From Macrostomum hystrix (lineage: Eukaryota; Animalia; Platyhelminthes), in the NCBI GenBank assembly GCA_950097015.1, contig CATNEN010000008.1:4464001-4528000 (forward strand): 64,000 nt of DNA. Direction: 5' to 3'. The translations under genes and the position numbers were made by a program. Positions 6,654 through 32,619 of the stretch are shown piece after piece; position 1 is the stretch's first letter, and each line of letters begins with the position of its first letter. The notes below the pieces were generated by a model, which was given only the letters and a program-made list of their open reading frames with translations, did no database searches and had not been told where the DNA came from.

Positions 6654-7875
6654 TCACAGGTCGATGCGGGCCACCTGAAGAAAGCTGAGGTCCTGCCTAG
6701 CCGAGTAGATCACAAATCGGTCCTGGCCGGGCACTGAAACATCGCTGCGCAGTGTCACGCTGATCTGGCTGCCGGCATCCAGTGTGACCATGCCAACTGT
6801 CAGGCAGGTCAGCGGCCGCACTGTGCTCAGAACCCGGCCGGTGAACTTGGCCGAGCCGTCGACCTGTACGGTGCACTCGATACTCCGAGGCACGCTGACG
6901 TTGTGCATCCGGACCACCAGCTGGGCGGCCACATAGTACATGCCCGCCTGCAGCACCCGCACCGAGGTGTCGTCGGGCGTCACGGCGAAGGCGTCCTCTT
7001 GGTAGGCGTGCTTCGGCACCCAGGGCCGCACTGGGATGTCGTTTTTGTGCTCTGTAATAATGATAATAATAAATTATTACACCTGCCACAATCGGGCCAG
7101 ATGTGCTGCCGACTGAAGGCTGCGTACAGCTGTTCACGCAGGACGCCACACCCACCCTCCATCACCCCAGCTGATGCTGGTTCCCATTTAACAGCTGGGT
7201 GAACTGAAGCAAATCAGAGTTTGAGTGTCTTGCTAAAGGACGCAAATTGTTCCAGTGGAGTGGGGAATCGAACTCCCGACCTTCAAGTCGTGAGTCCAAC
7301 AGTCTAAACGCTAGGCTAAAATCCCCCTTGGGAAATTAATAAAAGGCAATTTCAGCACAAAAGTACATGCTTAATGATCAGAGCAGTTTTCGATGGCGCT
7401 AAATTAATTACCTCTGCTCACGATGGCTCCCTGTCTCACTGTGCAGAAGAGACCCTGGAAGTTGCCACCACACGCTGGCAACCTTTCTGAGCTCAGTCTC
7501 AGGGAGATCTGAAAATCAGATTTTTGAATCACTACAGATTGAGTCTAAATTATTGTAGGATTCCACACAGTTTTGAGTACTCCCATCTCAATCGCTCACC
7601 ATTCGAGTCTCATCGGCGAGATGCTCGGATGAGTTCAACCAGCTGCTATTCAGCTTCGGATCGAATCGCTTCAGCCCGACTGTTGTGCTGAAGGTGAGAA
7701 CGCCGAGGACGCAGGCGGCCACCGCTGCCGCAGCCAGAACTAGCCGGGAGTGCCTTCTCGCCTTGGACATGCGGACTTGACGACTGACTGTTGGCTTGGA
7801 TGCAGCTGCTGGAGGCTCAACAGACTGAGCTTCCACTTGGAGCAGATGAGCATCGGGACTCGCCTCTTGAGACAT
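6654..7875 (-). CDS. TNF-ligand-like gene A (type II membrane, 256 aa, 3 exons)
   Basis: Exons 7875-7600, 7508-7412 and 7051-6654 (phases 0, 1), all GT-AG and in frame. TM segment LVLAAAAVAACVLGVLTF. TNF-domain hallmarks VRVLQAGMYYVAAQL, GMVTLDAGSQISV and C-terminal SFLQVARI. Confidence 0.75.
7054..7327 (-). mobile_element. tRNA-headed CORE-like SINE family 2 in intron 2 of TNF-like gene A
   Basis: Minus-strand head with GTTCGATTCC B box. CORE-like segment CCTTTAGCAAGACACT...TGCTTCAGTTCACCCAGCTGTTAAATGGG. (ATT)-type tail. Homologous to 31398-31688. Confidence 0.8.
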
Positions 7876-8479
7876 GTTTGGTTGAGTTCAGTAGACTTGT
7901 TTCAATCGTTGATTTGCTTCTAGAATGGAAGCTTTTGTTAGCAAAATGAAGTCCCTGGCTTATTATAAAGCCTGGGCAACCCTTGGCCCGCGTTCCCTTG
8001 GCCATCATTCTAGCTAAAAATAGCAATTCTGAAGTGCTCCTTAGGCCTGCCGCCGACTGGTGTCGTTGCGATGAAATCTCTGCAGCAGTTAAAATTAGAA
8101 GCTCATTGTGCCAGTTAGTGGCAGAGAATTGTGACGCCTCATTATTTTGTTGCTTTTTGGCACAGCTTTCGCCGTTTAATTTTGCAACCCTCGAGATTAA
8201 ATTTAGGTCCAGTCGGCGGTTTTCGAATAAACGAAAATAAAACATCACAATAATTAATTATATTTAAACAAAGTTTATTTTTGACAGTTTTAGCATTCTA
8301 AAAAAATTATAACCGACCTGATAATCTTTTTATTTCTCAGGTTAATCAATCAATTTATAACTGATGTAATTGATCTAAAAGATAATTTATAAATTGATCT
8401 CGTATCTGAAAATCGATGTGTTGATCGATTTTATTTTTATGAATTGACGATTTGATAATCAATGAATTGACTTATCTGA

Positions 8480-10765
8480 TAAAAATGATCTCTCTTATAA
8501 TCTGTGGATTAATCTCTCTGATCATCTGTGGATTGAATTCTCTGATCATCTGTGGATTAATCTCTCTGATCATCTGTGGATTAATCTCGCTGATCATCTG
8601 TGGATTGAATTCTCTGATCATCTGTGGATTGAATTCTCTGATCATCTGTGGATTGAATTCTCTGATCATCTGTGGATTGAATTCTCTGATCATCTGTGGA
8701 TTGAATTCTCTGATCATCTGTGGATTGAATTCTCTGATCATCTGTGGATTAATCTCTCTGATCATCTGTGGATTAATCTCGCTGATCATCTGTGGATTGA
8801 ATTCTCTGATCATCTGTGGATTGAATTATCTGATCATCTGTGGATTGATCTCTCTGATCATCTGTGGATTAATCTCTCAAATCATCTGTGGATTGAATTC
8901 TCTGATCATCTGTGCATTAATCTCTCTAATCATCTGTGGATTAATCTCGCTGATCATCTGTGGATTGAATTCTCTGATCATCTGTGGATTAATCTCGCTA
9001 ATCATCTGTGGATTGAATTTACTGATCATCTGTGGATTAATCTCTCAGATCATCTGTGGATTGAATTCTCTGATCATCTGTGGATTGAATTCACTGATCA
9101 TCTGTGGATTGAATTATCTGATCATCTGTGGATTGAATTCACTGATCATCTGTGGATTGAATTATCTGATCATCTGTGGATTGAATTCACTGATCATCTG
9201 TGGATTGAATTATCTGATCATCTGTGGATTGAATTATCTGATCATCTGTGGATTGAATTCTCTGATCATCTGTGGATTAATCTCTCTGATCATCTGTGGA
9301 TTAATCTCGCTGATCATCTGTGGATTAATCTCTCAAATCATCTGTGGATTGAATTCTCTGATCATCTGTGGATTGAATTCACTGATCATCTGTGGATTGA
9401 ATTATCTGATCATCTGTGGATTGAATTCACTGATCATCTGTGGATTGAATTATCTGATCATCTGTGGATTGAATTCTCTGATCATCTGTGGATTAATCTC
9501 TCTGATCATCTGTGGATTGAATTATCTGATCATCTGTGGATTGAATTCACTGATCATCTGTGGATTGAATTATCTGATCATCTGTGGATTGAATTATCTG
9601 ATCATCTGTGGATTGAATTATCTGATCATCTGTGGATTGATCTCTCTGATCATCTGTGGATTAATCTCTCAAATCATCTGTGGATTGAATTCTCTGATCA
9701 TCTGTGGATTAATCTCGCTGATCATCTGTGGATTAATCTCTCAAATCATCTGTGGATTGAATTCTCTGATCATCTGTGGATTGAATTCACTGATCATCTG
9801 TGGATTGAATTATCTGATCATCTGTGGATTGAATTCACTGATCATCTGTGGATTGATCTCTCAAATCATCTGTGGATTGAATTCTCTGATCATCTGTGGA
9901 TTAATCTCTCTGATCATCTGTGGATTGAATTATCTGATCATCTGTGGATTGAATTCACTGATCATCTGTGGATTAATCTCTCTGATCATCTGTGGATTGA
10001 ATTATCTGATCATCTGTGGATTGAATTCACTGATCATCTGTGGATTGAATTATCTGATCATCTGTGGATTGAATTATCTGATCATCTGTGGATTGAATTA
10101 TCTGATCATCTGTGGATTGATCTCTCTGATCATCTGTGGATTAATCTCTCAAATCATCTGTGGATTGAATTCTCTGATCATCTGTGGATTAATCTCTCTG
10201 ATCATCTGTGGATTAATCTCGCTGATCATCTGTGGATTAATCTCGCTGATCATCTGTGGATTGAATTCTCTGATCATCTGTGGATTAATCTCTCTGATCA
10301 TCTGTGGATTAATCTCTCTGATCATCTGTGGATTGAATTCTCTGATCATCTGTGGATTAATCTCTCTGATCATCTGTGGATTAATCTCTCTGATCATCTG
10401 TGGATTAATCTCTCTGATCATCTGTGGATTAATCTCTCTAATCATCTGTGCATTAATCTCTCTGATCATCTGTGCATTAATCTCTCTAATCATCTGTGGA
10501 TTAATCTCTCAGATCATCTGTGGATTAATCTCTCAGATCATCTGTGCATTAATCTCTCTGATCATCTGTGGATTGATCTCTCTGATCATCTGTGGATTAA
10601 TCTCGCTGATCATCTGTGGATTGAATTCTCTGATCATCTGTGGATTAATCTCTCTGATCATCTGTGGATTAATCTCTCTGATCATCTGTGGATTGATCTC
10701 TCTGATCATCTGTGGATTGATCTCTCTGATCATCTGTGGATTGATCTCTCTGATCATCTGTGGAA
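8480..10765. repeat. 21-bp satellite (TGATCATCTGTGGATTAATCTCTC-type), about 108 units
   Basis: Tandem units with TTAATCTC/TTGAATTC/TTGAATTA variants. Source of the 775-aa IICGL ORF. Confidence 0.97.
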
Positions 10766-11028
10766 TAATGTACCCCTGAATCGAAGGACTTTAAAATGCG
10801 ATCGCCTGTCAACAATTGAGAACTTTGACTAAAAAAACTGATAAAAGAGTTGCGACTTTTGAAGAAATCAGACTTGGGTGGCAACAAAGTTTATAAAACT
10901 GCTAAACTATGGTTGATGAGTCAGTCAGGTCAGGTGACACAGAAGCATGTGCTATGACTTTAGAAAAATGCGAACAAGGATACAGAGCTAGAAATCTAAA
11001 TCAAATGCAGCACGCGGCACACTGCGTG

Positions 11029-11741
11029 AGTGTCAGAGTGTCAGAGTGTCAGAGTTTCAGAGTGTCAGAGTGTCAGAGTGTCAGAGTGTCAGAGTGTCAG
11101 AGTGTCAGAGTGTCAGAGTGTCAGAGTGTCAGAGTGTCAGAGTGTCAGAGTGTCAGAGTGTCAGAGTGTCAGAGTGTCAGAGTGTCAGAGTGTCAGAGTG
11201 TCAGAGTGTCAGAGTGTCAGAGTGTCAGAGTGTCAGAGTGTCAGAGTGTCAGAGTGTCAGAGTGTCAGAGTGTCAGAGTGTCAGAGTGTCAGAGTGTCAG
11301 AGTGTCAGAGTATCAAAGTGTTAGAGTGTCAGAGTGTCAGAGTGTCAGAGTGTCAGAGTGTCAGAGTGTCAGAGTGTCAGAGTGTCAGAGTATCAAAGTG
11401 TCAGAGTGTCAGAGTGTCAGAGTGTCAGAGTGTCAGAGTATCAAAGTGTCAGAGTGTCAGAGTATCAAAGTGTCAGGGTGTCAGAGTGTCAGAGTGTCAG
11501 AGTGTCAGAGTGTCAGAGTGTTGGAGTGTCAGAGTGTCAGAGTGTCAGAGTGTCAAAGTGTCAGAGTGTCAGGGTGTCAGAGTGTCAGAGTGTCAGAGTG
11601 TCAAAGTGTCAGAGTGTCAGAGTGTCAGAGTGTCAGAGTGTTGGAGTGTCAGAGTGTCAGAGTGTCAGAGTGTCAAAGTGTCAGAGTGTCAGAGTGTCAG
11701 AGTGTCAGAGTGTCAGAGTGTCAGAGTGTCAGAGTGTCAGT
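11029..11741. repeat. 8-bp satellite (GTGTCAGA)n
   Basis: Direct inspection; about 89 units. Confidence 0.97.
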
Positions 11742-12217
11742 GCAGTTTCATCATGTCAGTGGTAAGTAGCCAAGTCCTAAATATCCTGAATCAAGTTGTA
11801 ATGTTTGGCTGAGTAATTTGACTGGCAATTTCCGGTTTGATTTAGCAAGATTTCAGAAGTGCAAGTGTTCAGGAAGTGAATCGGAATGTTTAACAAGATC
11901 TCAGTCGATTGAATCCTTCCTAGAAGCTTCATCTTTTACTTGCTTGCACTTGCAATTGCAAAATCGTTTATTTGTCATCGTCTGTTACAGATGACGTGCA
12001 TTGATAAGTGTCCAGCAATTACATGCGAAACATGGACTTGTCAAGCTAAGCCAGGTTAAAAGTGTAACGAGTGACGGAGTGGGGTTGTAACCTGTACGAT
12101 GTATGCAATAATAAATAAATGTACATAGACGTACACTTTAATTTCGGGTCTTGAAGTTAAAATTAATCTAAAAACACCCTCACTCAACGACACAAACTTT
12201 TAGAAGTAAAAGGGAGC

Positions 12218-12830
12218 AAATTGTCCCCAGTCCGATTGTCCCCAGTCAAATTGTCCCCAGTCCGATTGTCCCCAGTCCGACTGTCCCCAGTCCGATTGTC
12301 CCCAGTCAAATTGTCCCTAGTCTAATTGTCCCCAGTCAAATTGTCCCCAGTCCAATTGTCCCCAGTCAAATTGTCCCCAGTCAAATTGTCCCCAGTCAAA
12401 TTGTCCCTAGTCTAATTGTCCCCAGTCAAATTGTCCCTAGTCTAATTGTCCCCAGTCAAATTGTCCCCAGTCCAATTGTCCCCAGTCAAATTGTCCCCAG
12501 TCAAATTGTCCCCAGTCAAATTGTCCCTAGTCTAATTGTCCCCAGTCAAATTGTCCCCAGTCCAATTGTCCCCAGTCAAATTGTCCCCAGTCAAATTGTC
12601 CCCAGTCAAATTGTCCCCAGTCAAATTGTCCCCAGTCAAATTTTCCCTAGTCCAATTGTCCCCAGTCCAATTGTCCCCAGTCCAATTGTCCCCAGTCCGA
12701 TTGTCCCCAGTCCGATTGTCCCCAGTCAAATTTTCCCTAGTCCAATTGTCCCCAGTCAAATTGTCCCTAGTCCAATTGTCCCCAGTCAAATTGTCCCCAG
12801 TCAAATTGTTCCCAGTCCAATTGTCCCCAG
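12218..12830. repeat. 15-bp minisatellite (AATTGTCCCCAGTCA)n
   Basis: Direct inspection; about 40 units. Confidence 0.97.
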
Positions 12831-13263
12831 TGAGTTAAATAATTAAAACCACAATGATTCACTGTTTGCGCAGTTGAAAAGCTACAAATTAATTTTCTAA
12901 AACAAAATTTCTCCTGTATTTTTGTCACTTTTTTATTTCATACAAAATGTACTTTTATTGGGTAAATATAGTTTGTGATTAGAACTTGTGACACTTCATT
13001 GTTATAAAAACGTGTTAAACAGCAAAAAGAATATTTTACTCGAAGTACCTGAAGTTTTTACTGAACAAAATTGTTTAAGAATTTAACTGTCCTGATTTTT
13101 TTCTGAGAAGCAGATAGCAATAATAAACTCTGAAAGTAAATTGTACAGTAACTCAAGAATGGGATGCTCATTCTCTATAGTGAAAGTCACAGCCATAACC
13201 TGGGCCTAAGAACATTGTCAACACCGAGGCCCAGATTTAGTTTATTCAGGAATCAAAGCATTG

Positions 13264-15027
13264 TCACTGGCCAATCCTCGTCACCTGCAGGAAGGTGAGT
13301 TCCTTCCTACAAACGTGCAGCCTGAACTGATCCTGCCTCTCTCTGATTCCGTCCAGACTTGTCAGACTGACCCGGATTCGAGCTCCGGCCCGCAGGTGCC
13401 GTATGCCGATCGTCATGCAGGTCAAGGGCCGGCTGACGCTCAGTGACCTGGCAGCCGAACTGGGATCACTGTCGTCGATGTGCAAGGCGCACTCGATGGT
13501 GCGGACTGAGCTGGCATCCACCAGCTGGGCCACGAGCTGCGTGGTCATGTGGTACAGGCCGGGGCGCAGTACAACCAGTGTGGAGCCGCCATCGGCCAGA
13601 GAGAAGGCACCGTCTGCGACGTTTCCACTGCTGCTGTCTGGAGTCCATGGCGCCACAGTCACTGAGCTCTTGCCAGCTGGAATGCAATTTTAAGGGGCTA
13701 AATGACTGCAGACCTATTGCGGTACCAACTACCAACTGCAGTACCAACTACAGAACCAACTACAGAACCAACTACAGAACCAACTACAGAACCAACTACA
13801 GAACCAACTACAGAACCAACTACTGCACCAACTACAGGACCAACTACAGAACCAACTACAGAACCAACTACAGTACCAACTACAGTACCAACTATGGTAC
13901 CAAAAGCAGTGCCAACTACAGTACCAACAACAGAACTAACTATGGTACCAACTACAGTACCAACTAAACCACCAACTACAGTACCAACTAAACCACCAAC
14001 TACAGGACCAACTACAGTACCAACAATTACTAACAGTTGTCTAATCGGTTACCTCTGCTCAGAATGTCCATGTCGCGGCACAGATTCCCATAGAACTTGC
14101 TTTGACACGATTCCAAGCGTTCGTAAGCGATCCGCAGAGTGATCTAGAATGCGTATTGAATTCGTTTGTCAGGATTCAGAAGGCCCATGTTGGTCAGTGA
14201 TTGAATACCCAGCCAGGATTTTGTAGGGCTTACATTATCAGCCAAGACGCTGTTCGCATTGTCCATGGTCCTGGCCACCTGCAGGTAGGTGCTCTCCGGC
14301 TTGAACACTTGGATCCTGAACTGGCTCTTGTCCAGAGAGTCGTCAAGGTTGCGCAACCGGACACCAATCACGTCACCACCCCGCAGCCTCAGAATGCTGA
14401 CCGCCAGGCAGCTGATTGGCCGGCCGGCGCTCACGGACCGACCAGAGAAGGCCGCCCGGCCGTTGATGGTGATGTCGCACACGACGTCCTTGGCTGCGCC
14501 GGCTTCCTCCAGCAGCAGCTGGGTGGTGAGCTGAGTTTTTATTTTATACAAACCAGGCCGCTGCACCTGCACCTGTGCCGCCTGATTGACCACCGCGAAG
14601 CTGCCAGCCTTGGCGGTGCCATCGACAATGGCCCAAGGTCCGAGCTCGACATTTTTCTGACCCTCTGAAGTTTAAAAGTCAGTCAGTCAACAAATTCTGG
14701 TTAATTCTCTAAATAACAAACCATTGGCATTTAAAAAATTTAGCTAATTTTCTCACTTTTGGTCAGCACGATGGAGTTGCGGCAGAGGCTGCCGTTAAAA
14801 ACTCCCTGGCACGATGTCAGTTGTTGGGAGTCGACTTTCATAAAAATCTGGAAGTTAACATTAAGAAATAGTTATTTGAGCCGTACAGTTAGGCGCGAAG
14901 GTTCACAAAGGTGCGCGAAATTTACCGTGTCGGGAAGTTGGGACGAGTTCCCGAAAGGCGCGCCTTGCGCCAGCGGTATTCCTCCTAGGAGCAGCAGAAT
15001 AGCGACCACGGCTCCGAAGCTGAGCAT
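13264..15027 (-). CDS. TNF-like gene B with two tandem TNF homology domains (375 aa, or 389 aa from ATG 15069; 5 exons)
   Basis: Exons 15027-14926, 14847-14757, 14664-14234, 14143-14053 and 13676-13264 (phases 0, 1, 0, 1), all GT-AG with an open frame. N-terminal hydrophobic segment MLSFGAVVAILLLLGGIPLAQGA. Both domains have PGLY...TQL, L(R/H)xxG and T(Y/F)LQVxR motifs. TATA-like TATAAAT near 15151-15157. Confidence 0.75.
13728..14020. repeat. 12-bp minisatellite (ACCAACTACAGA)n in intron 4 of gene B
   Basis: Tandem units lying between the exons ending at 14053 and starting at 13676. Confidence 0.92.
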
Positions 15028-15782
15028 TCTCAGATGAGAAGTAGATTGATTCTTGGCGCAACTGGGCATACTGGCGAAATTTGATCAGGAAGCCTCGGTG
15101 AGTTTCTCTTAGAAGACTCGTTAACTTTGTGGCAGAGAAATTTGCGCCTTATTTATAGGCAATTTTTTGTCAGGTCATCCGCGCACTTCAGTCTAAATTG
15201 TCACTTCCGTTGGTTTCGCCACAGGCTGTAAATAGCATCAGTTTAGCCTCGCCCTCGACCAAGCCCTTCTAAAAATAGCGCCCGCCAACTCGAAAAGCCG
15301 CCAATTTTTTCATTCGCCATTCCGCACCGCCATTGTGTGATTCTTCCTGAAAATAACCTCTCGCCTTTGTTGACCATTGCCAAAAATACCCATTGTGCAC
15401 CTGCCACAGTGGATGAAATTAGAAACCTGTTGTTTGTGTTATCAATAAACTTCGACCTAGAGATTAATCAGAACTTGAATAGTTTTTTAATTTCTCAATT
15501 TGGCAACATTTCTTAGAAACAAAGTTCACCATCGCATACATTTTTAGACGAAAACATATTTTAAAGAAATTTCCTAAATACAATGGCCTTTTAAACGCCC
15601 TAAAATTCTATGATTTTAGTATTTTAAAAATAAAATCACGAAAAAAGTACCGGTTTATTAAACAAATATTATGATTCTCAATAATTGTTGCCCATCTGAC
15701 GGACAGGCCCAAAATATTCCTTTAATTAATTCCCACTCCACTTAAATAATTTGCGCCATTTAGCAAGACAAACTGAATGCCA

Positions 15783-18700
15783 AAAGAGTGTCTCAGTATC
15801 CCTGAAGAGTGTCTCAGCATCCCTGAAGGGTGTCTTAGTATCCCTGAAGAGTGTCTAAGCATCCCTGAAGAGTGTCTCAGTATCCCTGAAGAGTGTCTAA
15901 GCATCCCTGAAGGGTGTCTTAGTATCCCTGAAGAGTGTCTAAGCATCCCTGAAGAGTGTCTAAGCATCCCTGAAGGGTGTCTTAGTATCCCTGAAGAGTG
16001 TCTAAGCATCCCTGTAGAGTGTCTCAGTATCCCTGAAGAGTGTCTCAGTATCCCTGAAGAGTGTCTAAGCATCCCTGAAGGGTGTCTCAGTATCCCTGAA
16101 GAGTGCCTCAGCATCCCTGAAGGGTGTCTCAGCATCCCTGAAGGGTGTCTCAGTATCCCTGAAGAGTGTCTCAGCATCCCTGAAGGGTGTCTCAGTATCC
16201 CTGAAGAGTGTCTAAGCATCCCTGAAGAGTGTCTCAGTATCACTGAAGAGTGTCTAAGCATCCCTGAAGAGTGTCTAAGCATCCCTGAAGAGTGTCTAAG
16301 CATCCCTGAAGAGTGTCTAAGCATCCCTGAAGGGTGTCTCAGCATCCCTGAAGAGTGTCTAAGCATCCCTGAAGAGTGTCTAAGCATCCCTGAAGAGTGT
16401 CTAAGCATCCCTGAAGAGTGTCTAAGCATCCCTGAAGGGTGTCTCAGCATCCCTGAAGGGTGTCTCAGTATCCCTGAAGAGTGTCTAAGCATCCCTGAAG
16501 GGTGTCTAAGCATCCCTGAAGGGTGTCTTAGTATCCCTGAAGGGTGTCTCAGCATCCCTGAAGGGTGTCTCAGCATCCCTGAAGGGTGTCTCAGTATCCC
16601 TGAAGAGTGTCTAAGCATCCCTGAAGAGTGTCTAATATCACTGAAGAGTGTCTCAGTATCCCTGAAGGGTGTCTCAGCATCCCTGAAGGGTGTCTCAGCA
16701 TCCCTGAAGGGTGTCTCAGTATCCCTGAAGAGTGTCTAAGCATCCCTGAAGAGTGTCTAATATCACTGAAGAGTGTATCAGTATCCCTGAAGAGTGTCTC
16801 AGTATCCCTGAAGAGTGTCTCAGCATCTCTGAAGAGTGTCTCAGTATCACTGAAGAGTGCCTCAGTATCCCTGAAGAGTGCCTCAGTATCCCTGAAGAGT
16901 GTCTAATATCACTGAAGAGTGTCTCAGTATCCCTGAAGAGTGTCTCAGCATCTCTGAAGAGTGTCTCAGTATCACTGAAGAGTGCCTCAGTATCCCTGAA
17001 GAGTGCCTCAGTATCCCTGAAGAGTGTCTAATATCACTGAAGAGTGTCTTAGTATCCCTGAAGAGTGTCTTAGTATCCCTGAAGAGTGTCTCAGTATCTC
17101 TGAAGAGTGTCTTAGTATCCCTGAAGAGTGTCTCAGTATCCCTGAAGAGTGTCTCAGTATCCCTGAAGAGTGCCTCAGTATCCCTGAAGAGTGTCTAATA
17201 TCACTGAAGAGTGTCTCAGTATCCCTGAAGAGTGTCTCAGTATCCCTGAAGAGTGTCTTAGTATCACTGAAGAGTGTCTCAGTATCCCTGAAGAGTGTCT
17301 CAGTATCCTGAAGAGTGTCTCAGTATCCCTGAAGAGTGTCTTAGTATCCCTGAAGAGTGTCTTAGTATCCCTGAAGAGTGTCTCAGCATCCCTGAAGAGT
17401 GTCTAATATCACTGAAGAGTGTCTCAGTATCCCTGAAGAGTGTCTCAGCATCCCTGAAGAGTGTCTAATATCACTGAAGAGTGTCTCAGTATCCCTGAAG
17501 AGTGTCTCAGCATCCCTGAAGAGTGTCTAATATCACTGAAGAGTGTCTCAGCATCCCTGAAGAGTGTCTAATATCACTGAAGAGTGTCTCAGTATCCCTG
17601 AAGAGTGTCTCAGCATCCCTGAAGAGTGTCTAATATCACTGAAGAGTGTCTCAGTATCCCTGAAGAGTGTCTCAGCATCCCTGAAGAGTGTCTAATATCA
17701 CTGAAGAGTGTCTCAGTATCCCTGAAGAGTGTCTCAGCATCCCTGAAGAGTGTCTAATATCACTGAAGAGTGTCTCAGTATCCCTGAAGAGTGTCTCAGC
17801 ATCCCTGAAGAGTGTCTAATATCACTGAAGAGTGTCTCAGTATCCCTGAAGAGTGTCTCAGCATCCCTGAAGAGTGTCTAATATCACTGAAGAGTGTCTC
17901 AGCATCCCTGAAGAGTGTCTAATATCACTGAAGAGTGTCTCAGTATCCCTGAAGAGTGTCTCAGCATCCCTGAAGAGTGTCTAATATCACTGAAGAGTGT
18001 CTCAGTATCCCTGAAGAGTGTCTCAGCATCCCTGAAGAGTGTCTAATATCACTGAAGAGTGTCTCAGTATCCCTGAAGAGTGTCTCAGCATCCCTGAAGA
18101 GTGTCTAATATCACTGAAGAGTGTCTCAGTATCCCTGAAGAGTGCCTCAGTATCCCTGAAGAGTGTCTAATATCACTGAAGAGTGTCTCAGTATCCCTGA
18201 AGAGTGTCTCAGTATCCCTGAAGAGTGTCTTAGTATCACTGAAGAGTGTCTCAGTATCCCTGAAGAGTGTCTCAGTATCCTGAAGAGTGTCTCAGTATCC
18301 CTGAAGAGTGTCTTAGTATCCCTGAAGAGTGTCTTAGTATCCCTGAAGAGTGTCTCAGCATCCCTGAAGAGTGTCTAATATCACTGAAGAGTGTCTCAGC
18401 ATCCCTGAAGAGTGTCTAATATCACTGAAGAGTGTCTCAGTATCCCTGAAGAGTGTCTCAGCATCCCTGAAGAGTGTCTAATATCACTGAAGAGTGTCTC
18501 AGTATCCCTGAAGAGTGCCTCAGTATCCCTGAAGAGTGTCTAATATCACTGAAGAGTGTCTCAGTATCCCTGAAGAGTGTCTCAGTATCCCTGAAGAGTG
18601 TCTTAGTATCACTGAAGAGTGTCTCAGTATCCCTGAAGAGTGTCTCAGTATCCTGAAGAGTGTCTCAGTATCCCTGAAGAGTGTCTTAGTATCCCTGAAG

Positions 18701-18963
18701 AGTGTCTTAGTATCCCTGAAGAGTGTCTCAGCATCCCTGAAGAGTGTCTAATATCACTGAAGAGTGTCTCAGCATCCCTGAAGAGTGTCTAATATCACTG
18801 AAGAGTGTCTCAGTATCCCTGAAGAGTGTCTCAGCATCCCTGAAGAGTGTCTAATATCACTGAAGAGTGTCTCAGTATCCCTGAAGAGTGTCTCAGCATC
18901 CCTGAAGAGTGTCTAATATCACTGAAGAGTGTCTCAATATCCCTGAAGGGTGTCTCAGTATGC
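15783..18963. repeat. 21-bp satellite (CCCTGAAGAGTGTCTCAGTAT)n, array 1
   Basis: About 150 units with 42/63-bp higher-order patterns. Confidence 0.97.
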
Positions 18964-19777
18964 CTAAAGTCTACTCCTAGGTGTCCTTAGTTTAACACAG
19001 TATAGTTTCAGTCCACCCAAAATGTGTACGGACCCAATTGAGGCAGGTGTAATAAATGAAGATCAAAATATTTTTCTCGTAGAGGCGAGAAAGAGAACTT
19101 CCACTCTCTAAATTCTCTACCTGTGACAGATTTCTTTTAATTCTCCTAATTTGTTCAGGTGTCCTTTTGTAGACAAGCGGAGAATGACTCAAGTACCTCG
19201 GCGTAGCTGTCATGCTGTCTGTGCGAACAACCTTGTTGTTGCCATTATAAACTATCCATAACTGACCTTGCAAGCACTGAAAATGAACAATTCTGCAAAG
19301 AAACTATTTTTTAAATTTTATTTGACGCTTTCAACGGATGAAAATATTTCAGTAGTATCGGCAGTACTACGGCAGTAGTATCTACAGTGAAAGCTGTAAT
19401 TTTTGTTGTGTAACTGCTAGTACTACAAAGCTACTGTTGTGCCATACGAAATTGACTTTGGATTGTCAAACCCGATTTGTTTCATTGATATCTAAAGCAA
19501 CCAAACTTGGGAATCGAAGGAGAAAAGCTTCGATGTTTTTGGAAGGAATGTTTTTGCATAGCTATTATATAAGCGTATATTTCATGCATAAGTAGTCATG
19601 AAAAGTAGGCGAACAAAGGCACAATAGAAAATTTCTTTATAACAAAAGTTTGGCAGTGGAATCAAAAGAGGCAAAGTTGAGAATTAGCTTTGCTTCGGTT
19701 AGAATGAATAAATGTGCAGCAGATGAGGGCTTATGTACATTATGCTGATCCCAAAGTCCCAAGGTCGCGTTGAAGAG

Positions 19778-20542
19778 TCACGGCAGCCGCACCGCACGAA
19801 TGTAGGTGCTGGCCTCAGTTGTCTGCAGCTCCTGCCGACTCAGCATCCGCAACTTCATCGTGACTTTGTCGCCAGCCCGCAGCGTCACCAGAATGTTCAG
19901 CTTGCAGACGAGGCTGACATCCGTGACAGCGGTGCCAGGCTCCGATTGCAACATCTCGTGCTCGCAGACGCGCCTACCGATCACACCGTTGATGGCCAAG
20001 CCGCCGGACAGGTGCAAGTCACCCGAGCTGAAGCGAACGCGCGCGGCTGCGTCAACGATGTAGACGCTGTCGCGAAGGGCACGGATGTGCCTCCGGTCGG
20101 GCGTCAGCTCAAAGTCCTCGGCCAGCTCGCCAAAATGCTTGAGTGGCCCCAGACTGCCAGCAGTCATGTATCGCCTGGCCTCCCAGCAGGGGTCGCCAGG
20201 GCATGCGCCGGTGTTGGACACGTCCAGAAAGAACTCTGACAGTCGGGCGCTCTGCGGCTTGTCCTGTCTGTGCGGGCTGCTCAATCGGCCGATCTGCTGC
20301 AAGTTTCGGACGCTGAGGGCCAGCGCAACGAGCGCGCAGGTCGCGAGGGCCACGCCAGCGACGACTCCAAGGCGGGGCCTCCAGCAGCTTTGAGATGATC
20401 GTAGCCTCGAGGATGTGACACCTTCTTCTAGTCGGCATAGCTCCGTCGGGGTGACGCACTTCGATTCAAGTTCGCTGAAATTATCCGTGATAGTTTCGGC
20501 TGAGCCATCCACTGCCTGGTGGGCCTTGTCGGTTACTCTCAT
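19778..20542 (-). CDS. TNF-ligand-like gene C (type II membrane, 254 aa, intronless)
   Basis: Single ORF with TM LGVVAGVALATCALVALALSV. TNF-like FELTPDRRHIRALRDSVYIVDA, LVTLRAGDKVTM and STYIRAVRL. TATAAG near 20672-20677. Confidence 0.75.
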   Translation of the reverse strand: MRVTDKAHQAVDGSAETITDNFSELESKCVTPTELCRLEEGVTSSRLRSSQSCWRPRLGVVAGVALATCALVALALSVRNLQQIGRLSSPHRQDKPQSARLSEFFLDVSNTGACPGDPCWEARRYMTAGSLGPLKHFGELAEDFELTPDRRHIRALRDSVYIVDAAARVRFSSGDLHLSGGLAINGVIGRRVCEHEMLQSEPGTAVTDVSLVCKLNILVTLRAGDKVTMKLRMLSRQELQTTEASTYIRAVRLP

Positions 20543-21002
20543 GGCTGTGGCTGAGTTCTTGTGAGTTTGAATTTTAGCTACCTTTTTTACGGCGCGTTTA
20601 AATTTTGTTTAAACGGACGCTTCCCCGATAAATCCCTGGATTGGCCCTGGCACAAGCCGTTGGCGACGTTCCTTATAGCTCGGTGCTGGCATGTACACGC
20701 GTACGTAATCTATTTTTAGTTTTTTAGCATTCGGAATTTCCCTGGGACTTCCAATGGCCTTCTTGACTTCCTTCTAGTGACTCAATTAAGAAGTACGTTT
20801 TTTATCACAAGGAAGTTTGCTTTGGTACAAGCAATGAGTCATGCTGATACTATTGCGAAAAAAATTCAAACAATTCTTTTTTGTAATAACAGCCTAGCAT
20901 TCTTATCTACCCTAAAAGTGCACTAAGGATTGTAAAGAGAGGTGAAGCCTTCGTGATTTCCTCTAAACAACTGTGCTTTAATGATCTCTGTATAGTATTT
21001 TG

Positions 21003-22700
21003 GAATGCCTGAAGAGTGTCTTAGTATCCCTGAAGAGTGTCTTAGTAGCCCTGAAGAGTGTCTTAGTATCACTGAAGAGTGTCTTAGTATCACTGAAGAG
21101 TGTCTTAGTATCCCTGAAGAGTGTCTCAGTATCACTGAAGAGTGTCTCAGTATCCCTGAAGAGTGTCTTAGTATCACTGAAGAGTGTCTTAGTATCACTG
21201 AAGAGTGTCTTAGTACCACTGAAGAGTGTCTAAGTATCCCTGAAGAGTGTCTTAGTACCACTGAAGAGTGTCTAAGACCACTAAGGAGTGTCTCAGCATC
21301 ACTGAAGGGTGTCTCAGTAACCCTGAAGAGTGTCTTAGTATCCCTGAAGAGTGTCTTAGTATCCCTGAAGAGTGTCTAAGTATCCCTGAAGAGTGTCTTA
21401 GTATCCCTGAAGAGTGTCTTAGTATCCCTGAAGAGTGTCTTAGCATCACTGAAGAGTGTCTCAGTATCACTGAAGAGTGTCTTAGTATCACTGAAGAGTG
21501 TCTTAGCATCACTGAAGAGTGTCTCAGTATCCCTGAAGAGTGTCTTAGCATCACTGAAGAGTGTCTTAGCATCACTGAAGAGTGTCTTAGTATCCCTGAA
21601 GAGTGTCTTAGTATCACTGAAGAGTGTCTTAGCATCACTGAAGAGTGTCTCAGTATCCCTGAAGAGTGTCTTAGTACCACTGAAGAGTGTCTAAGACCAC
21701 TAAGGAGTGTCTCAGCATCACTGAAGGGTGTCTCAGTAACCCTGAAGAGTGTCTTAGTATCCCTGAAGAGTGTCTTAGTATCCCTGAAGAGTGTCTAAGT
21801 ATCCCTGAAGAGTGTCTTAGTATCCCTGAAGAGTGTCTTAGTATCCCTGAAGAGTGTCTTAGCATCACTGAAGAGTGTCTTAGCATCACTGAAGAGTGTC
21901 TCAGTATCACTGAAGAGTGTCTTAGCATCACTGAAGAGTGTCTCAGTATCCCTGAAGAGTGTCTTAGCATCACTGAAGAGTGTCTTAGCATCACTGAAGA
22001 GTGTCTTAGTATCCCTGAAGAGTGTCTTAGTATCACTGAAGAGTGTCTTAGCATCACTGAAGAGTGTCTCAGTATCCCTGAAGAGTGTCTCAGTATCCCT
22101 GAAGAGTGTCTTAGTATCACTGAAGAGTGTCTTAGTATCCCTGAAGAGTGTCTTAGTATCCCTGAAGAGTGTCTTAGCATCACTGAAGAGTGTCTCAGTA
22201 TCACTGAAGAGTGTCTTAGCATCACTGAAGAGTGTCTCAGTATCACTGAAGAGTGTCTTAGCATCACTGAAGAGTGTCTCAGTATCCCTGAAGAGTGTCT
22301 TAGCATCACTGAAGAGTGTCTTAGCATCACTGAAGAGTGTCTCAGTATCCCTGAAGAGTGTCTTAATATCCCTGAAGAGTGTCTTAGCATCACTGAAGAG
22401 TGTCTTAGTATCCCTGAAGAGTGTCTCAGTATCACTGAAGAGTGTCTCAGTATCCCTGAAGAGTGTCTCAGTATCCCTGAAGAGTGTCTCAGCATCCCTG
22501 AAGAGTGTCTTAGCATCCCTGAAGAGTGTCTCAGTATCCCTGAAGAGTGTCTCAGTATCCCTGAAGAGTGTCTCAGTATCCCTGAAGAGTGTCTAAGTAT
22601 CACTGAAGACTGTCTCAGTATCCCTGAACAGTGTCTCAGCATCCCTGAAGAGTGTCTCAGCATCCCTGAAGAGTGTCTCAGCACTCCTGAAGAGTGTCAA
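21003..22700. repeat. 21-bp satellite, array 2 (same family and orientation as 15783-18963)
   Basis: Units CCCTGAAGAGTGTCTTAGTAT and CACTGAAGAGTGTCTTAGCAT. Contains a 419-bp internal duplication (21268 and 21687). Confidence 0.97.
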
Positions 22701-23245
22701 AGTACCATGTAGTTTGTCCACAAAGTTTTCACTAAATTGAAACCGTAGGGTCCCAGAAGAATGTGTGGGACATCCCTGAAGAGTATCGGGGAAGCCTGGA
22801 AGTGTCCTTTAGTCCCTGAAGGGTTTTTGCGTATCATTAAAGAGATTAGAAGACATCGAAATTTTTATGGCTAATAAGCTAGCAAAACTTTTCTGAATTT
22901 TCAGAATTCCGTGTATTGTAACACTAGATGACTGGTTGCACTTGCTAGTATATTTTGGCTAACAGAATGTGTTCCATTAAGAAAGTTTTAATGATGATAT
23001 ATACACGAAATATAAAGCTTTGGTATAAAACAGCTATGCTTTTATGCAGGACATGCAATTTTGTAATGTTGGACGATTAGCGTTAAATAATAAAAAGTAA
23101 CGAGATAGATGTTAATAAATGGAAGAGTAATGGAGCAGTAACAGCATGCCGCCAATTAGAACACTGCAGCTACATTGATTGAAGCAAATCGCACAATAAA
23201 CGGTCATTCGGTCATGTAATCCTGCAATGGATGCTCACAGTGTGC

Positions 23246-24043
23246 TCATCCGATGCGGACCAGCCTTAGAAATGTACTCCGGGATGATTTCTGAACCATC
23301 TGCCGATTGTGCAGGTTCAGTTTGATTGACAGCTCATCTCCGGCCAGCAGTTTGGCGTATCCGCTGAGCTGGCACTGCAGAGTCTCCGACTGCAGCCTCA
23401 GAGACTCTGCTGGCAGCACGGGGAGGCGCTGGAGACAGTTCAGCACATCCATTTTTTCCAGATTTTTGGAGCTGCCCGCTTGCTGTCTAATGACCTCGAT
23501 AGAGCCCTGCAGAGCCAGGCTGCCGGACTCGAAGGTCACGCGCACCTGAGCGTCAATGCCGAACACACCTGGACGCAGGATGCGAACCCGGCGTCGATCC
23601 TCGGTCAGCTGGAAGCAGCCAGCTTGGCTGGTTTGGTCTGTCTGGCGCAGCCGGCCCAGGCCAGTTTTGGTCATCATGTACTGCACGCCACTCAGGCACG
23701 GGTTTTCCAAGTTGCCTTCGTCCTCACATTTCTTCAAGGAAGATATGTCCAGAGCGAAAGCTGCGAATTGTGCCTGCGACTCGGCTGACTGCTGCTGCTG
23801 CTGCTGCATGGCCTGAAACAAGCGTCTTCTTCCGCTGATATTGCCGTTGAGCATCTCGTCTAGGCCAGCCGGTGAGTTCCGGTCTCCAATGACAACAAGG
23901 CAGATGGCAACGAGGCCTAGCAGCAAGCCGGACCCAGCAGCGGTGGCAAGGCAGGCTTTGCGGCACGAGCCGGATCGCCTAGGAGCAGCGGAATTCACTT
24001 CAATAGCTGACGGAGTCTGCACCAGAGGAAGTTCTTGAGACAT
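23246..24043 (-). CDS. TNF-ligand-like gene D (type II membrane, 265 aa, intronless)
   Basis: TM LLLGLVAICLVVIG and a basic stalk cluster GRRR. TNF motifs VRILRPGVFGIDAQV, YAKLLAGDELSI and STFLRLVRI. Confidence 0.8.
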   Translation of the reverse strand: MSQELPLVQTPSAIEVNSAAPRRSGSCRKACLATAAGSGLLLGLVAICLVVIGDRNSPAGLDEMLNGNISGRRRLFQAMQQQQQQSAESQAQFAAFALDISSLKKCEDEGNLENPCLSGVQYMMTKTGLGRLRQTDQTSQAGCFQLTEDRRRVRILRPGVFGIDAQVRVTFESGSLALQGSIEVIRQQAGSSKNLEKMDVLNCLQRLPVLPAESLRLQSETLQCQLSGYAKLLAGDELSIKLNLHNRQMVQKSSRSTFLRLVRIG

Positions 24044-24508
24044 GCCTGCTCTGATCTTATGCTCGTAGCAACAAAACTTGTCACGAATTACAGCATACTT
24101 TCACAGCACACACGCGCTTTTTATCTGTATGTATATATAGATTTGAGCGGAGTACCGTTAGACCACACAGTCTGGCCACTGTGCGACTAAAATTAGCTCG
24201 AGAGTAAGTTAAACGCGGTTGTCATTTACTTTGGTATGACCAGTGAAAAGCAGATTTGCGGTTTCAGACACCAGAGCCATTCTCTACTGTTTATTGAATT
24301 CAAAAGATATATGCCTAGTAAGCGCCACACTAGAATAAGCGAAACGACACTTTTTCACACTTTCATCATTTATTTTTAGCTGCAAAAACAAGCATTTTTT
24401 CTAAAATTAGAAGTTAATTCCTTGTGTGACGCGTCCGCAAAGATTTTACTTTAGATCTTCTTATGGCGGTATACAAATATAGCAATATTTTTAATTTTTT
24501 TTTACTTC

Positions 24509-24509
<1 letters not shown>

Positions 24510-24574
<65 letters not shown>

Positions 24575-24579
24575 CGTTC

Positions 24580-24628
<49 letters not shown>

Positions 24629-24702
24629 ATAGTTAGATAGATAGTTTAGTTTTTTTGTTTGTTTGGTAGTTTGTTTGTTTGTTTGTTTGTTTGTTTGTTT
24701 GT
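24510..24702. repeat. Microsatellites (TTAG)n and (GTTT)n
   Basis: Direct inspection. Confidence 0.95.
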
Positions 24703-25451
24703 TTCCTTAAACTGGGAATTTTTATATTTCTGCGAACTCCAAAGACGGTCATTTTCCGCTAATCCGGAAATTCCGTTGCAAAATTATTGGCGTCTTCCTT
24801 CACATCGTCATCTGGAAGTGCACATTGCGGATGTTTTTAAGAGTATGAAAATGTTTTCTGTTACTCTGTGTACCCATTTTACGCACGGAAATCTGAACTT
24901 AGATCATATAAGCAAGTCGCGAAGGTTTTTTTACTTGTAACACTGCAAAGCTTTACCAAATGAAATTGAATTTCTAGAATGTGCTGATAAAATTAGCATT
25001 CAACATTCTAAAATTAAACAAACAAGGTAGCGTTTAGCTTCTTAGCGAACTTGCTTAACTGCCTTTTTAACTACTCGCGCATCTTAATTTAGTCAGAAAG
25101 AATGCCGTGAATGCGGATTTGCCCTTTTGTTATCTAGCCTCAGGACGGAGCCCTTTACATTAACTGGGCGCAACGTACATACCCCCGTTAAACTGGCCTC
25201 GGACAGGTTAAAAAATGGAGCGAATGTACACTCCTAAGTGTACACTTAGTGAAGAGGTCCCGCGGAAAGCCCGCAAGCATTAGATTAGAGGCTAAAATTA
25301 GAAAGGGAAGTTCACCACCCACCCCCTTCCAGCTGCATAAATTTTTCGTTTTTCGCTTTCTTAGTTCTCAGAAATAAAAACGCTAAACGCAACTGTTTAT
25401 AATTCTGAATTGTGGACCAGCTGAAATCATCAAACTCAAACAGCCTGCAAC

Positions 25452-27998
25452 ATGAATGGACCGTACGAGAATCTGATCCAGTCGGGCCTCGATAACCCAG
25501 CATGTTTGGATCACGCGGAATATGGGCCAATTGAGAAGCGATTTGTCAAACGACCCGACGATGCTTATCGAGTTAAAAGTTTGACTGCCAAATTTTCTGT
25601 CATTTGCGCCGTGATCCTGCTGGTGGCAGCGGCCTCTACAACTGGCATGTCCGGCTGGGCCTATTATTCGATGCGGCAGAGAGCTGACAATAGTCCATGC
25701 GTGAGCACCGATATACTAAATATGAATTTTATATAAAAAACTAAATTCACTTGCACTGATTTTCATTGCAGACCTACACAGCCTTTGTCTTGGACACTGA
25801 TGCCATACAGTCATGCGGACTGCCTGCTATGCACCACCCACCGTGTCAGATTAACTCCACCGGGGCATTGTTGACCTCTGAGATGTGTAAGTTGTGGATT
25901 TGCTTCTAAATCTGCTTTGTAAAGCTAGATTATCAATCCATTCTGTCCTCCGAGGCTAGATTAACAAACCATTGTATTCTCCGAGGCTAGATTAGCAATC
26001 CATTCCATCCTCCGAGGCTAGATTAGCAATCCATTCTATCCTCCGAGGCTAGATTAGCAATCCATTCTTATCCTCCGAGGCTAGATTAGCAATCCATTCT
26101 TATCCTCCGAGGCTAGATTAGCAATCCATTCTTATCCTCCGAGGCTAGATTAGCAATCCATTGTATTCTCCGAGGCTAGATTAGCATCTATTCTATCCTC
26201 CGAGGCTAGATTAGCAATCTATTCTATCCTCCGAGGCTAGATTAGGAATCCATTCTATCCTCCGAGGCTAGATTAGCAATCCATTCTTATCCTCCGAGGC
26301 TAGACTAGCAATCCATTCTTATCCTCCGAGGCTAGATTAGCAATCCATTCTTATCCTCCGAGGCTAGATTAGCAATCCATTCTTATCCTCCGAGGCTAGA
26401 TTAGCAATCCATTCTTATCCTCCGAGGCTAGATTAGCATCTATTCTATCCTCCGAGGCTAGATTAGCAATCTATTCTATCCTCCGAGGCTAGATTAGGAA
26501 TCCATTCTATCCTCCGAGGCTAGATTAGCAATCCATTCTTATCCTCCGAGGCTAGACTAGCAATCCATTCTTATCCTCCAAGGCTAGATTAGCAATCCAT
26601 TCTTATCCTCCGAGGCTAGATTAGTAATCCATTCTTATCCTCCGAGGCTAGATTAGCAATCCATTCTTATCCTCCGAGGCTAGATTAGCAATCCATTCTG
26701 TCCTCCGAGGCTAGATTAACAAACCATTGTATTCTCCGAGGCTAGATTAGCAATCCATTATTATCCTCCGAGGCTAGATTAGCAATCCGTTCTTATCCTC
26801 CGAGGCTAGATTAGCAATCCATTATTATCCTCCGAGGCTAGATTAGCAATCCATTCTGTCCTCCGAGGCTAGATTAACAAACCATTGTATTCTCCGAGGC
26901 TAGATTAGCAATCGATGATAATCTCCTAAGCTAGACTATGTCTCTATATTAGTCATGCACCTATGACTCAAACGGCACAAACTTAATGAAGAAAAGAACA
27001 ATTTGGTGCGAAAGTTTATTTTAAGCAACACAAGGTAATTACTGCCCAACACTTAGAAAAAGGATGTGCAATTATACTGAATCTGTACGCGTGCTTCACT
27101 CATTGAAACTAACTAGGATGTCCCGCCTGTAACTTCTAAAAATGTTTTCTAAATGTATTACTATATTCAAATTACCCTACTATCAGTAGAGTAGGTAGTA
27201 GGTTCTTGCAATATTTAATTTAACGATATAGAGCTGCCATGTTTATTTGCACAGTCAACAACGCAGTGGGGCCCTGGAAATCTGGAGAGCTGGACGGTGT
27301 TGTCGACGGCGGCTACAGCGGCAGCGTCTGCGGCTTCGAGCTGGAGAGGTCTAGGACCCACCTGGTTGTGCGCCAGCCTGGCTTGTACCAGCTGACTGGC
27401 CAGGTGAGCTAGAGGGCGAGGTAGAACGATTCGGTCAATAAATCATAATTGATTAATCAATCCATCGATTAAACAAACATAAAATGACTAAATCATTCAA
27501 AAGATAAATCGATCTATAAATGGAATAACCGATGTATAAATAGAATAACCGATCTATAAATAGAATAACCGATCTATAAATAGAATAACCGATCTATAAA
27601 TAGAATAACCGATCTATAAATAGAATAATCGATCAATAAATAGAGTAATCGATCGAAAAATAAAATATTCGATCGATAAACTGCCGTATCGATCGACAAA
27701 GAGACTAAATCGATCGATACAAAATCGATCAATGAAAGAGTATATAAAACGACGAATTACTTGTTGCTAGGTAACCTTCACTGACGATGGCCCGGCCCAC
27801 CTGGAGTGGCAGGTGAATCACGCCGAGTGGATCGCCGTGAAGCGCGGCCGCGGCGATCGCGCCGGGCCAACTCAGGCCCGCCTGGAGGCCGTGCGCCGGC
27901 TGGCTGCCGGAGACAAGCTGTCGCTGCACCTGGACCGGGGCGAGAGGCGCCTAGCAACCCCTGCCCCGACTACCCACATCGGGCTTGTCCGCCTCTGA
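25452..27998 (+). CDS. TNF-ligand-like gene E (type II membrane, 246 aa, 4 exons)
   Basis: Exons 25452-25700, 25772-25886, 27255-27403 and 27771-27998 (phases 0, 1, 0), GT-AG and in frame. TM FSVICAVILLVAAASTTG. Motifs HLVVRQPGLYQLTGQVTF, VRRLAAGDKLSL and THIGLVRL. Confidence 0.78.
25928..26935. repeat. 31/32-bp minisatellite (ATCCTCCGAGGCTAGATTAGCAATCCATTCT)n in intron 2 of gene E
   Basis: About 32 tandem units with no unique spacers. Confidence 0.95.
27520..27730. repeat. 20-bp minisatellite (AAATAGAATAACCGATCTAT)n in intron 3 of gene E
   Basis: Direct inspection; degenerate toward the ends. Confidence 0.85.
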
Positions 27999-28597: not shown

Positions 28598-29018
28598 TCC
28601 ACTTGTTCACCCACCCTCCCAGTTCACACTTGTTCACCCACCCTTCCAGTTCACACTTGTTCACCCACCCTTCCAGTTCACACTTGTTCACCCACCCTTC
28701 CAGTTCACACTTGTTCACCCACCCTTCCAGTTCACACTTGTTCACCCACCCTTCCAGTTCACACTTGTTCACCCACCCTTCCAGTTCACACTTGTTCACC
28801 CACCCTTCCAGTTCACACTTGTTCACCCACCCTCCCAGTTCACACTTGTTCACCCACCCTTCCAGTTCACACTTGTTCACCCACCCTTCCAGTTCACACT
28901 TGTTCACCCACCCTTCCAGTTCACACTTGTTCACCCACCCTCCCAGTTCACACTTGTTCACCCACCCTTCCAGTTCACACTTGTTCACCCACCCTTCCAG
29001 TTCACACTTGTTCACCCA
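28598..29018. repeat. 27-bp minisatellite (CACTTGTTCACCCACCCTTCCAGTTCA)n
   Basis: About 15 units just downstream of the glycosyltransferase stop codon. Confidence 0.95.
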
Positions 29019-32554: not shown

Positions 32555-32619
32555 CCCGGATGGACTCCACTTGTGGCTGGCAGGGTCGGATATTGTTTTA
32601 TTAAAACTGCAGCAGCGAT

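Follow-up and report, generated by a model that had tools for sequence, protein, structure and literature searches.

A tandem cluster of five putative TNF-superfamily ligand genes in the macrostomid flatworm Macrostomum hystrix

Introduction

Here we describe a group of five neighboring genes, named A to E, in a 64-kb stretch of Macrostomum hystrix contig CATNEN010000008.1 (hereafter the window, numbered from its first nucleotide). All five are intact; they lie between positions 6654 and 27998 and encode six domains of 155-175 amino acids (aa) each. We interpret the locus as a macrostomid array of five TNF-superfamily ligand genes in tandem, whose six domains represent three old subfamilies (A with the two domains of B, B1 and B2; C with D; and E on its own). 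To this reading, taken as a whole, we assign a probability of roughly 0.85. Ligands of this kind are already known in related flatworms, and the locus adds to that known picture a compact tandem array, three ancient subfamilies that score below the Pfam threshold, shared intron positions and a two-domain gene with transcript support.

Results

Gene organization

A preliminary description, made from the sequence alone, had placed five genes in this interval and had found three of them split among the predicted open reading frames (ORFs). All five were confirmed, each giving a complete ORF once spliced, with canonical GT..AG dinucleotides at every splice site, and the three split genes (A, B and E) are multi-exon, while C and D are intronless (Table 1). 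The locus of B was also placed correctly, although the start proposed at 15027 corresponds to the second ATG in frame; the first lies at 15069, and transcript contigs extend to 15108. A search with a hidden Markov model (HMM) of the family found no further domain of this kind elsewhere in the window.

The exon models of A and E were drawn by analogy with the structure of B, which is confirmed by transcripts (see below). In gene A, the putative first exon runs from an ATG at 7875 to a phase-0 donor (GTGAGC) after 7600. Its second exon is the sole open AG..GT segment with two Cys that is similar to the confirmed 91-nt exons of B, and the corresponding ORF piece matches the family HMM at 9.6e-9. 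The third exon follows a TTACAG acceptor, and its phase-1 intron is positioned as in B. Gene E has its ATG at 25452 and, as in A, a phase-0 GTGAGC donor, after 25700. Two intron positions are common to A, B and E: a phase-0 intron preceding a small exon that codes for strand A and a Cys-bounded loop, and a phase-1 intron eight or nine codons ahead of a conserved Pro-Trp (the GPW motif). An extra intron, after GLYQLTGQ, is present only in E.

Relatedness of the six domains

The three strand motifs on which the preliminary description had relied, namely G(L/M/V)(Y/F)...Q, LxxG(D/S/A) and a terminal (S/T)(F/Y/H)xxxxRx, were found in all six domains of our alignment, in which pairwise identity ranges from 14 to 37%. 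Single-sequence comparisons (phmmer, Z=1e5) sorted the domains into three groups, with E-values of 1e-18 to 1e-28 among A, B1 and B2 and of 1e-16 between C and D, and E standing alone; similarity across groups was not significant by this measure. Profiles, on the other hand, bridged the groups: a profile built without E recovered the spliced E domain at 6e-7, a C/D/E profile recovered B2 at 6e-7 and A at 2.5e-4, and an A/B/E profile recovered D at 2.6e-8. These comparisons indicate that the resemblance of the six domains goes beyond chance.

In a maximum-likelihood tree, the grouping (B2,(A,B1)) had support of 99/97 and 95/93 and the pair (C,D) of 93/90; no deeper node was resolved. Since the tree joins A and B1 to the exclusion of B2, A would be nearer to B1 than B1 is to B2, the latter two being 36% identical. 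B may therefore be the product of a fusion between two adjacent genes, or else A may descend from an ancestor with two domains. The history of B need not then be a simple, recent duplication within the gene, although at 36-37% identity both statements are tentative.

Sequence profiles and predicted structures point to TNF ligands

For remote searches, A, B and E were entered exon by exon, and the short loop exons were omitted from the profiles because MAFFT misplaced them. When the paralogue profile was compared with all PDB sequences, each of the 40 matches was a TNF ligand or C1q. The E-values were 4.5e-8 for single-chain APRIL-BAFF, 5e-4 for EDA, 6e-4 for APRIL, 8e-4 for 4-1BBL and 0.011 for Spodoptera (S.) frugiperda Eiger, with alignments extending exactly to the C-terminus of the domain. 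A profile of A and B only found EDA at 0.0075, and 22 of its 24 matches were TNF ligands. The likeness to TNF homology domains proposed in the preliminary description is thus borne out as whole-domain profile homology to proven TNF ligands. Of the suggested comparison with Pfam families PF00229 (TNF) and PF00386 (C1q), the profile side favored TNF, with C1q appearing only at E >= 1.2, while single sequences remained below the Pfam TNF cut-off.

Against 1.8 billion representative proteins the paralogue profile gave 28 matches at E <= 1e-3, the best at 8.4e-11, so that close relatives are absent from that library. Of ten remote matches that were scanned, six pass the curated Pfam TNF cut-off; two others come from Macrostomum (M.) lignano, and the source of one calls it 'TNF_2 domain-containing'. 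All 40 language-model neighbours of D were TNF clusters (score 0.92). Together, the sequence profiles, the language-model neighbours and these transitive links to Pfam TNF members indicate that the domains are TNF ligands rather than C1q proteins.

Two domains were modeled with AlphaFold. The D model, built with an alignment of paralogues and remote matches, has ten strands, a mean predicted local distance difference test (pLDDT) score of 76.9 and a predicted template-modeling (pTM) score of 0.73. Foldseek matched it in the PDB to TNF-alpha, FasL, BAFF (target template-modeling (TM) score 0.80), RANKL and TWEAK at ~1e-8 with probability 1.00, and TNF ligands took all of the top 50 places. As a control against circularity, the C model was built with paralogues from the window only; it reached pLDDT 75.8 and pTM 0.72, and its best matches were EDA-A1, TWEAK, RANKL, BAFF and Eiger (probability 1.0, E again ~1e-8). 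The top 50 places were TNF ligands here too, apart from ranks 25 and 28, both taken by ExsFA chains of Bacillus (B.) cereus. In a shape search of the ESM Atlas, an arthropod TNF cluster came first (TM 0.71). As the preliminary description had anticipated, C and D are predicted to form jelly-rolls, and in these models, which are not solved structures, the domains adopt the ten-strand TNF-type fold.

Protein architecture

All five proteins begin with a hydrophobic 19-mer near the N-terminus (score 2.2-2.5), with more K/R before than after it, and each domain ends 0-3 residues ahead of the stop codon. NxS/T sites lie C-terminal to the anchor in every case in A, D and E and in three of four cases in B; the only site of gene C, at residue 21, precedes it. 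The K/R bias and the placement of NxS/T sites agree with a type II protein whose domain is extracellular. In B, the segment (residues 15-33) is followed by AQG|AP and may therefore be a cleaved signal peptide. The preliminary description had counted four proteins with type II transmembrane topology: the anchor was indeed found, but in all five, with the proviso that in B it may instead be a cleaved signal peptide.

Neither a collagen-like Gly-X-Y stalk nor a canonical furin site was found in the five proteins, and a tribasic GRRR occurs in the stalk of D only. C and D contain a Cys-x19/20-Cys pair, the second member of which aligns (alignment A4) with the conserved Cys of the 'SCYT' strand in those TNF matches that pass Pfam. 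The first Cys is displaced in A and B, and E has no such pair. The two domains of B are joined by a 12-residue linker, which runs from the final strand of B2 to the opening strand of B1.

These features also bear on whether the domains might be C1q-like or BclA-like jelly-roll proteins outside the TNF family. C1q proteins (PF00386) combine a signal peptide, a Gly-X-Y stalk and a gC1q domain, an architecture that the five proteins do not share, as they have no such stalk and four or five of them have an N-terminal anchor. Some signals do point toward these families: for exon 3 of gene A the Pfam family BclA_C scored slightly above TNF (E=0.0012 and E=0.0065, both below the cut-off) and it was the sole match, sub-threshold, for B2; C1q-related factor stands at the bottom of the PDB profile list (E=1.2); some remote matches (P0004 and P0016) have BclA_C or C1q signals; and the ESM Atlas shape matches also include bacterial C1q-like and phage proteins. 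TNF ligands nevertheless outrank C1q by at least three orders of magnitude in the profile search, fill all (D) or all but two (C) of the top 50 Foldseek places and account for every language-model neighbour of D. On the basis of the profile ranking, Foldseek, the language-model neighbours and the stalk, a C1q or BclA identity was rejected as highly unlikely.

Transcript evidence

Contigs of four public runs were mapped on 13100-15250, the region of gene B. Two runs (X5 and X9) gave one contig of ~1.43 kb each, aligned in five blocks and skipping four intervals with CT..AC at their plus-strand borders (GT..AG when read on the minus strand). The joints 14847/14926 and 14664/14757 were present in X5, X9 and X10, and the joints 14143/14234 and 13676/14053 in X5 and X9, all four introns thereby being confirmed by contigs from three public runs, with X10 contributing two joints. 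The X5 and X9 contigs cover exon 1 over 14926-15108 and join it to exon 2, and in the region of exon 5 contigs span 13100-13676. Both domains of gene B are encoded by a single spliced mRNA. Because the B contigs skip four GT..AG introns, the runs of the study to which they belong contain cDNA. The spliced models of the preliminary description thus have contig support in B, the one multi-exon gene testable in this way.

A 12-bp repeat at 13730-14024 was considered as a coding linker in B and excluded, as transcript contigs splice most of it out within intron 4. On the plus strand, the same repeat would read as a Pro/Thr-rich ORF, and one 42-nt X9 contig lies on it.

For gene C, the expression evidence consists of word shares in runs rather than mapped contigs: 0.76-0.99 of its words were present in runs of an RNA-like study (P2). 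No gene B contig was obtained from run X2, though this run contains 0.99 of the gene C words; such an absence can be false. With gene C in X2 and full-length B in X5 and X9, the paralogues may differ in the sample or body region in which they are expressed.

It could be argued that some of the five genes are decaying pseudogenes, or that the gene models are artefacts, given that transcript-side evidence is limited to B and C, with none for A, D and E, and that the locus is dense in minisatellites. We regard this as exceedingly improbable. Five intact frames with canonical splice sites and conserved intron phases argue otherwise, as do the correct splicing of B transcripts, the nearly whole presence of C in the RNA-like runs and the retention of the core motifs in all six domains.

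Repeats and neighboring sequence

Minisatellites fill the intergenic space as well as the second intron of E (Table 1), and by length the locus is mostly satellite. Gene C is flanked on both sides by a 21-bp minisatellite, at 15784-18969 (~153 copies) and 21008-22698 (~81 copies); the units of the two arrays differ by one base after rotation, and both arrays contain long spurious ORFs on both strands.

Outside the cluster, a minus-strand ORF at 31703-32554 (283 aa) contains a DXD region of glycosyltransferase type (Pfam PF04488, E=3.6e-9) and is most similar to an M. lignano protein, with 77% identity over 42% of the query. This match places the window in a macrostomid flatworm distinct from M. 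lignano, which is also the only flatworm named among the relatives of the TNF-like genes. The minus-strand ORF at 33336-34094 is repetitive and matches Cornifin and other repeat families; it is probably a low-complexity repeat and not a true member, and very strong GC and AT skew was seen around it, over 32000-36000. A further minus-strand ORF, at 47534-48265, matches peptidase M28 weakly (E=1.9e-4, barely above the cut-off) and is probably one exon of a larger gene.

Table 1. Positions in the window of the genes of the cluster, their exons and the minisatellite arrays other than the 21-bp arrays. HMM, match of the ORF piece to the family model; UTR, untranslated region.
Feature	Position	Strand	Content	Basis
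Gene A	7875-7600, 7508-7412, 7051-6654	-	256 aa, one domain	
Gene A exon 1, coding part	7600-7875	-	Cytoplasmic tail, anchor (aa 45-63) and stalk with two NxS/T sites, as predicted	Splice sites inferred
Gene A exon 2 (97 nt)	7412-7508	-	First beta-strand and Cys-x8-Cys loop	Analogy with B; HMM
Gene A exon 3	6654-7051	-	Remainder of TNF homology domain and stop codon	Analogy with B
Gene B	15069-14926, 14847-14757, 14664-14234, 14143-14053, 13676-13264	-	389 aa, two domains	
Gene B exon 1	14926-15108	-	5' UTR, ATG at 15069, putative signal peptide or anchor (aa 15-33)	Contigs
Gene B exon 2 (91 nt)	14757-14847	-	First strand and Cys loop of N-terminal domain B2	Contigs
Gene B exon 3	14234-14664	-	Remainder of B2 and 12-aa linker	Contig pieces, joints, translation
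Gene B exon 4 (91 nt)	14053-14143	-	First strand and Cys loop of C-terminal domain B1	Contigs
Gene B exon 5, coding part	13264-13676	-	Remainder of B1 and stop codon; 3' UTR to at least 13100	Contigs
Gene C	20542-19778	-	254 aa, single exon; predicted type II membrane protein, C-terminal TNF homology domain aa ~98-254	
Gene D	24043-23246	-	265 aa, single exon; predicted type II membrane protein, C-terminal TNF homology domain aa ~89-265	
Gene E	25452-25700, 25772-25886, 27255-27403, 27771-27998	+	246 aa	
Gene E exon 1	25452-25700	+	Cytoplasmic tail and anchor, as predicted	Inferred
Gene E exon 2 (115 nt)	25772-25886	+	First strand and Cys-x9-Cys loop	Inferred; HMM 4.1e-9
Gene E exon 3	27255-27403	+	GPW motif to GLYQLTGQ strand	Inferred; HMM 1.5e-13
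Gene E exon 4	27771-27998	+	C-terminal half of domain and stop codon	HMM 8.2e-20
Minisatellite	8491-10764		Period 24	
Minisatellite	11028-11740		Period 8	
Minisatellite	12217-12831		Period 15	
Minisatellite	25924-26913		Period 32	
Minisatellite	28600-29018		Period 27	

Discussion

Assignment of the five genes to the TNF superfamily

Several observations weigh against our assignment. None of the six domains, searched as single sequences or exons, reaches the curated gathering score of Pfam TNF, which is 23 bits: gene A (exon 3) scored 16.9 bits and B1 13.8 bits (E=0.059), and B2, C, D and the exons of E gave no Pfam TNF match. A profile of C and D alone found nothing in the PDB, so that these two are assigned on the strength of the joint profile, the structural models and the language-model neighbours; a word-based homologue search with full-length D likewise gave no match. 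Both AlphaFold models are of moderate confidence, and the loop after strand A, which holds the Cys pair, has a pLDDT of 53-57. Splicing of A and E was modeled from analogy and canonical sites rather than from reads. Lastly, Bertevello et al. (2020; PMC7519573) give a single NGFR-like TNFR per flatworm, which is odd beside many divergent ligands.

The extreme divergence between neighboring genes (14-37% identity) raises the further possibility that TNF fold and ancestry were kept while the receptor-ligand role was lost, the proteins having been recruited to some other extracellular job, for example in adhesion, as a structural or secretory product or as a fast-evolving reproductive protein, as with other members of the C1q/TNF fold. 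Rapid divergence is, however, common among TNF ligands, and conservation in these domains is highest in the strands of the trimer core. Such a change of role would also agree with the lack of close relatives among 1.8 billion proteins, with the one canonical TNFR of the flatworm literature (PMC7519573) and with run X2, which contains gene C but no B contig and could thus reflect tissue- or sample-restricted expression. Four or five of the proteins, on the other hand, retain the type II architecture typical of signaling ligands, and we consider a loss of the ligand role quite unlikely.

Under this assignment, each protein is predicted to begin with a short tail in the cytoplasm, followed by a signal-anchor and a stalk, and to end in the TNF homology domain. 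By analogy with the rest of the family, trimers, with each domain as one wedge, would be assembled via the conserved aromatic and hydrophobic strands (GLY..Q, LxxGD, TFLxVxRI); that the strands forming the trimer core in known ligands are the best-conserved parts here is suggestive only with regard to trimers. The ligands would then be displayed on the membrane or shed, and would engage and cluster receptors with cysteine-rich domains (CRDs), with TRAF/JNK/NF-kB or death-domain signaling downstream. No receptor gene was found in the window.

Gene B poses a particular question in this respect, since a protein with two domains cannot close a trimer alone and therefore needs either a third domain from another chain or a 3x2 assembly. 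The former could be a 2+1 assembly, for example with its nearest paralogue A. Carried further, B could represent a 'two-thirds single-chain' ligand of natural origin, obliged to recruit a single-domain paralogue (most plausibly A, its neighbor and closest relative) into a fixed 2+1 heterotrimer, with the three subfamilies signaling via expanded, minimal single-CRD receptors rather than via one NGFR-like TNFR. We offer this as speculation, and as rather unlikely to hold in full; if true, a regenerating flatworm would be using its ligands as a combinatorial code.

Because the TNF ligands described here fall below the Pfam cut-off, Pfam-based censuses undercount flatworm TNF ligands, which bears on statements that the ligand is absent from other flatworms. 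TNF signaling in this phylum is relevant to how parasitic flatworms, having lost a ligand of their own, came to respond to the TNF of their hosts (PMC7519573). It is also relevant to the control of regeneration and cell death in free-living species.

Comparison with known TNF systems

Drosophila has a single TNF ligand (Eiger), and the contrast that the preliminary description drew with it is correct. It is also incomplete and overstates the novelty of the locus, as multiple ligands of free-living flatworms have been published (PMC7519573) and a large TNF expansion in the Pacific oyster is mentioned in a preprint's review of earlier work (10.1101/2024.07.27.603686).

The closest comparison is with other free-living flatworms. 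In Bertevello et al. (2020; PMC7519573), TNF ligands with transmembrane helices are reported from M. lignano, M. tuba and Microdalyellia; M. lignano has four genome-predicted ligands and six reconstructed from RNA-seq, as well as a TNFR; the ligands underwent repeated duplications; and no ligand was found in parasitic species. Our proteins come from the same phylum and very probably the same genus as the M. lignano and M. tuba ligands, and they are similar to the ligands of free-living flatworms in having a type II transmembrane helix, a C-terminal TNF domain and multiple paralogues. They differ in that the four genome-predicted M. lignano ligands were found with Pfam TNF at E<1e-10, a family that none of our six domains passes. 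Neither five genes arrayed in tandem, nor introns at shared positions, nor a gene with two domains is mentioned in the consulted passages of that paper. Our best database matches include P0007/P0029 and P0017/P0030 of M. lignano, but their similarity to the cluster is remote (family-profile E-values of 3e-6 to 7e-5), and one-to-one orthology was not clear, pairwise phmmer being too weak and the deep tree nodes unresolved.

The gene for P0029, a TNF-like protein of 268 aa, was located on M. lignano contigs NIVC01002249.1, NIVC01000017.1 and NIVC01001726.1 with similar neighbor genes; its presence on three separate contigs points to three near-identical copies in the M. lignano assembly. Each of these contigs has a second TNF-like ORF or called gene ~10 kb downstream on the same strand, so that a tandem arrangement is not unique to M. 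hystrix. Of the lineage-specific expansion with very diverged paralogues proposed in the preliminary description, the tandem arrangement and the divergence hold, while lineage specificity is only partly shown in view of the M. lignano pair and of the deep tree nodes, for which the tree gave no resolution.

The cluster also shows similarity to the EDA/APRIL/BAFF/TWEAK/Eiger branch, which supplied the best profile matches (EDA, APRIL and single-chain APRIL-BAFF) and, for the predicted models, the best or near-best structural matches (EDA-A1, TWEAK, BAFF and Eiger). The Cys pair of C and D may correspond to the disulfide of this branch, whereas the partner Cys is shifted in A and B and E is without it. 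The cluster proteins differ from the branch in an extra Cys-bounded loop after strand A, and from EDA in having no collagen stalk.

The general picture of invertebrate TNF evolution is unchanged by this locus, as both ligand expansions and multi-domain TNF proteins were already known: a preprint (10.1101/2024.07.27.603686) describes TNF domains arrayed in tandem, two or three to a protein, in invertebrates and counts as many as 27 Eiger paralogues in one mollusc. Among the remote matches to our profile, an 877-aa protein (P0001) was matched in four stretches and therefore contains several such domains; a Hydractinia protein of 1834 aa (P0031) belongs to the same cluster as P0001. The 12-aa linker of B connects one domain to the next in the same way as in engineered single-chain ligands (such as PDB 4zch), although B has two domains rather than three.

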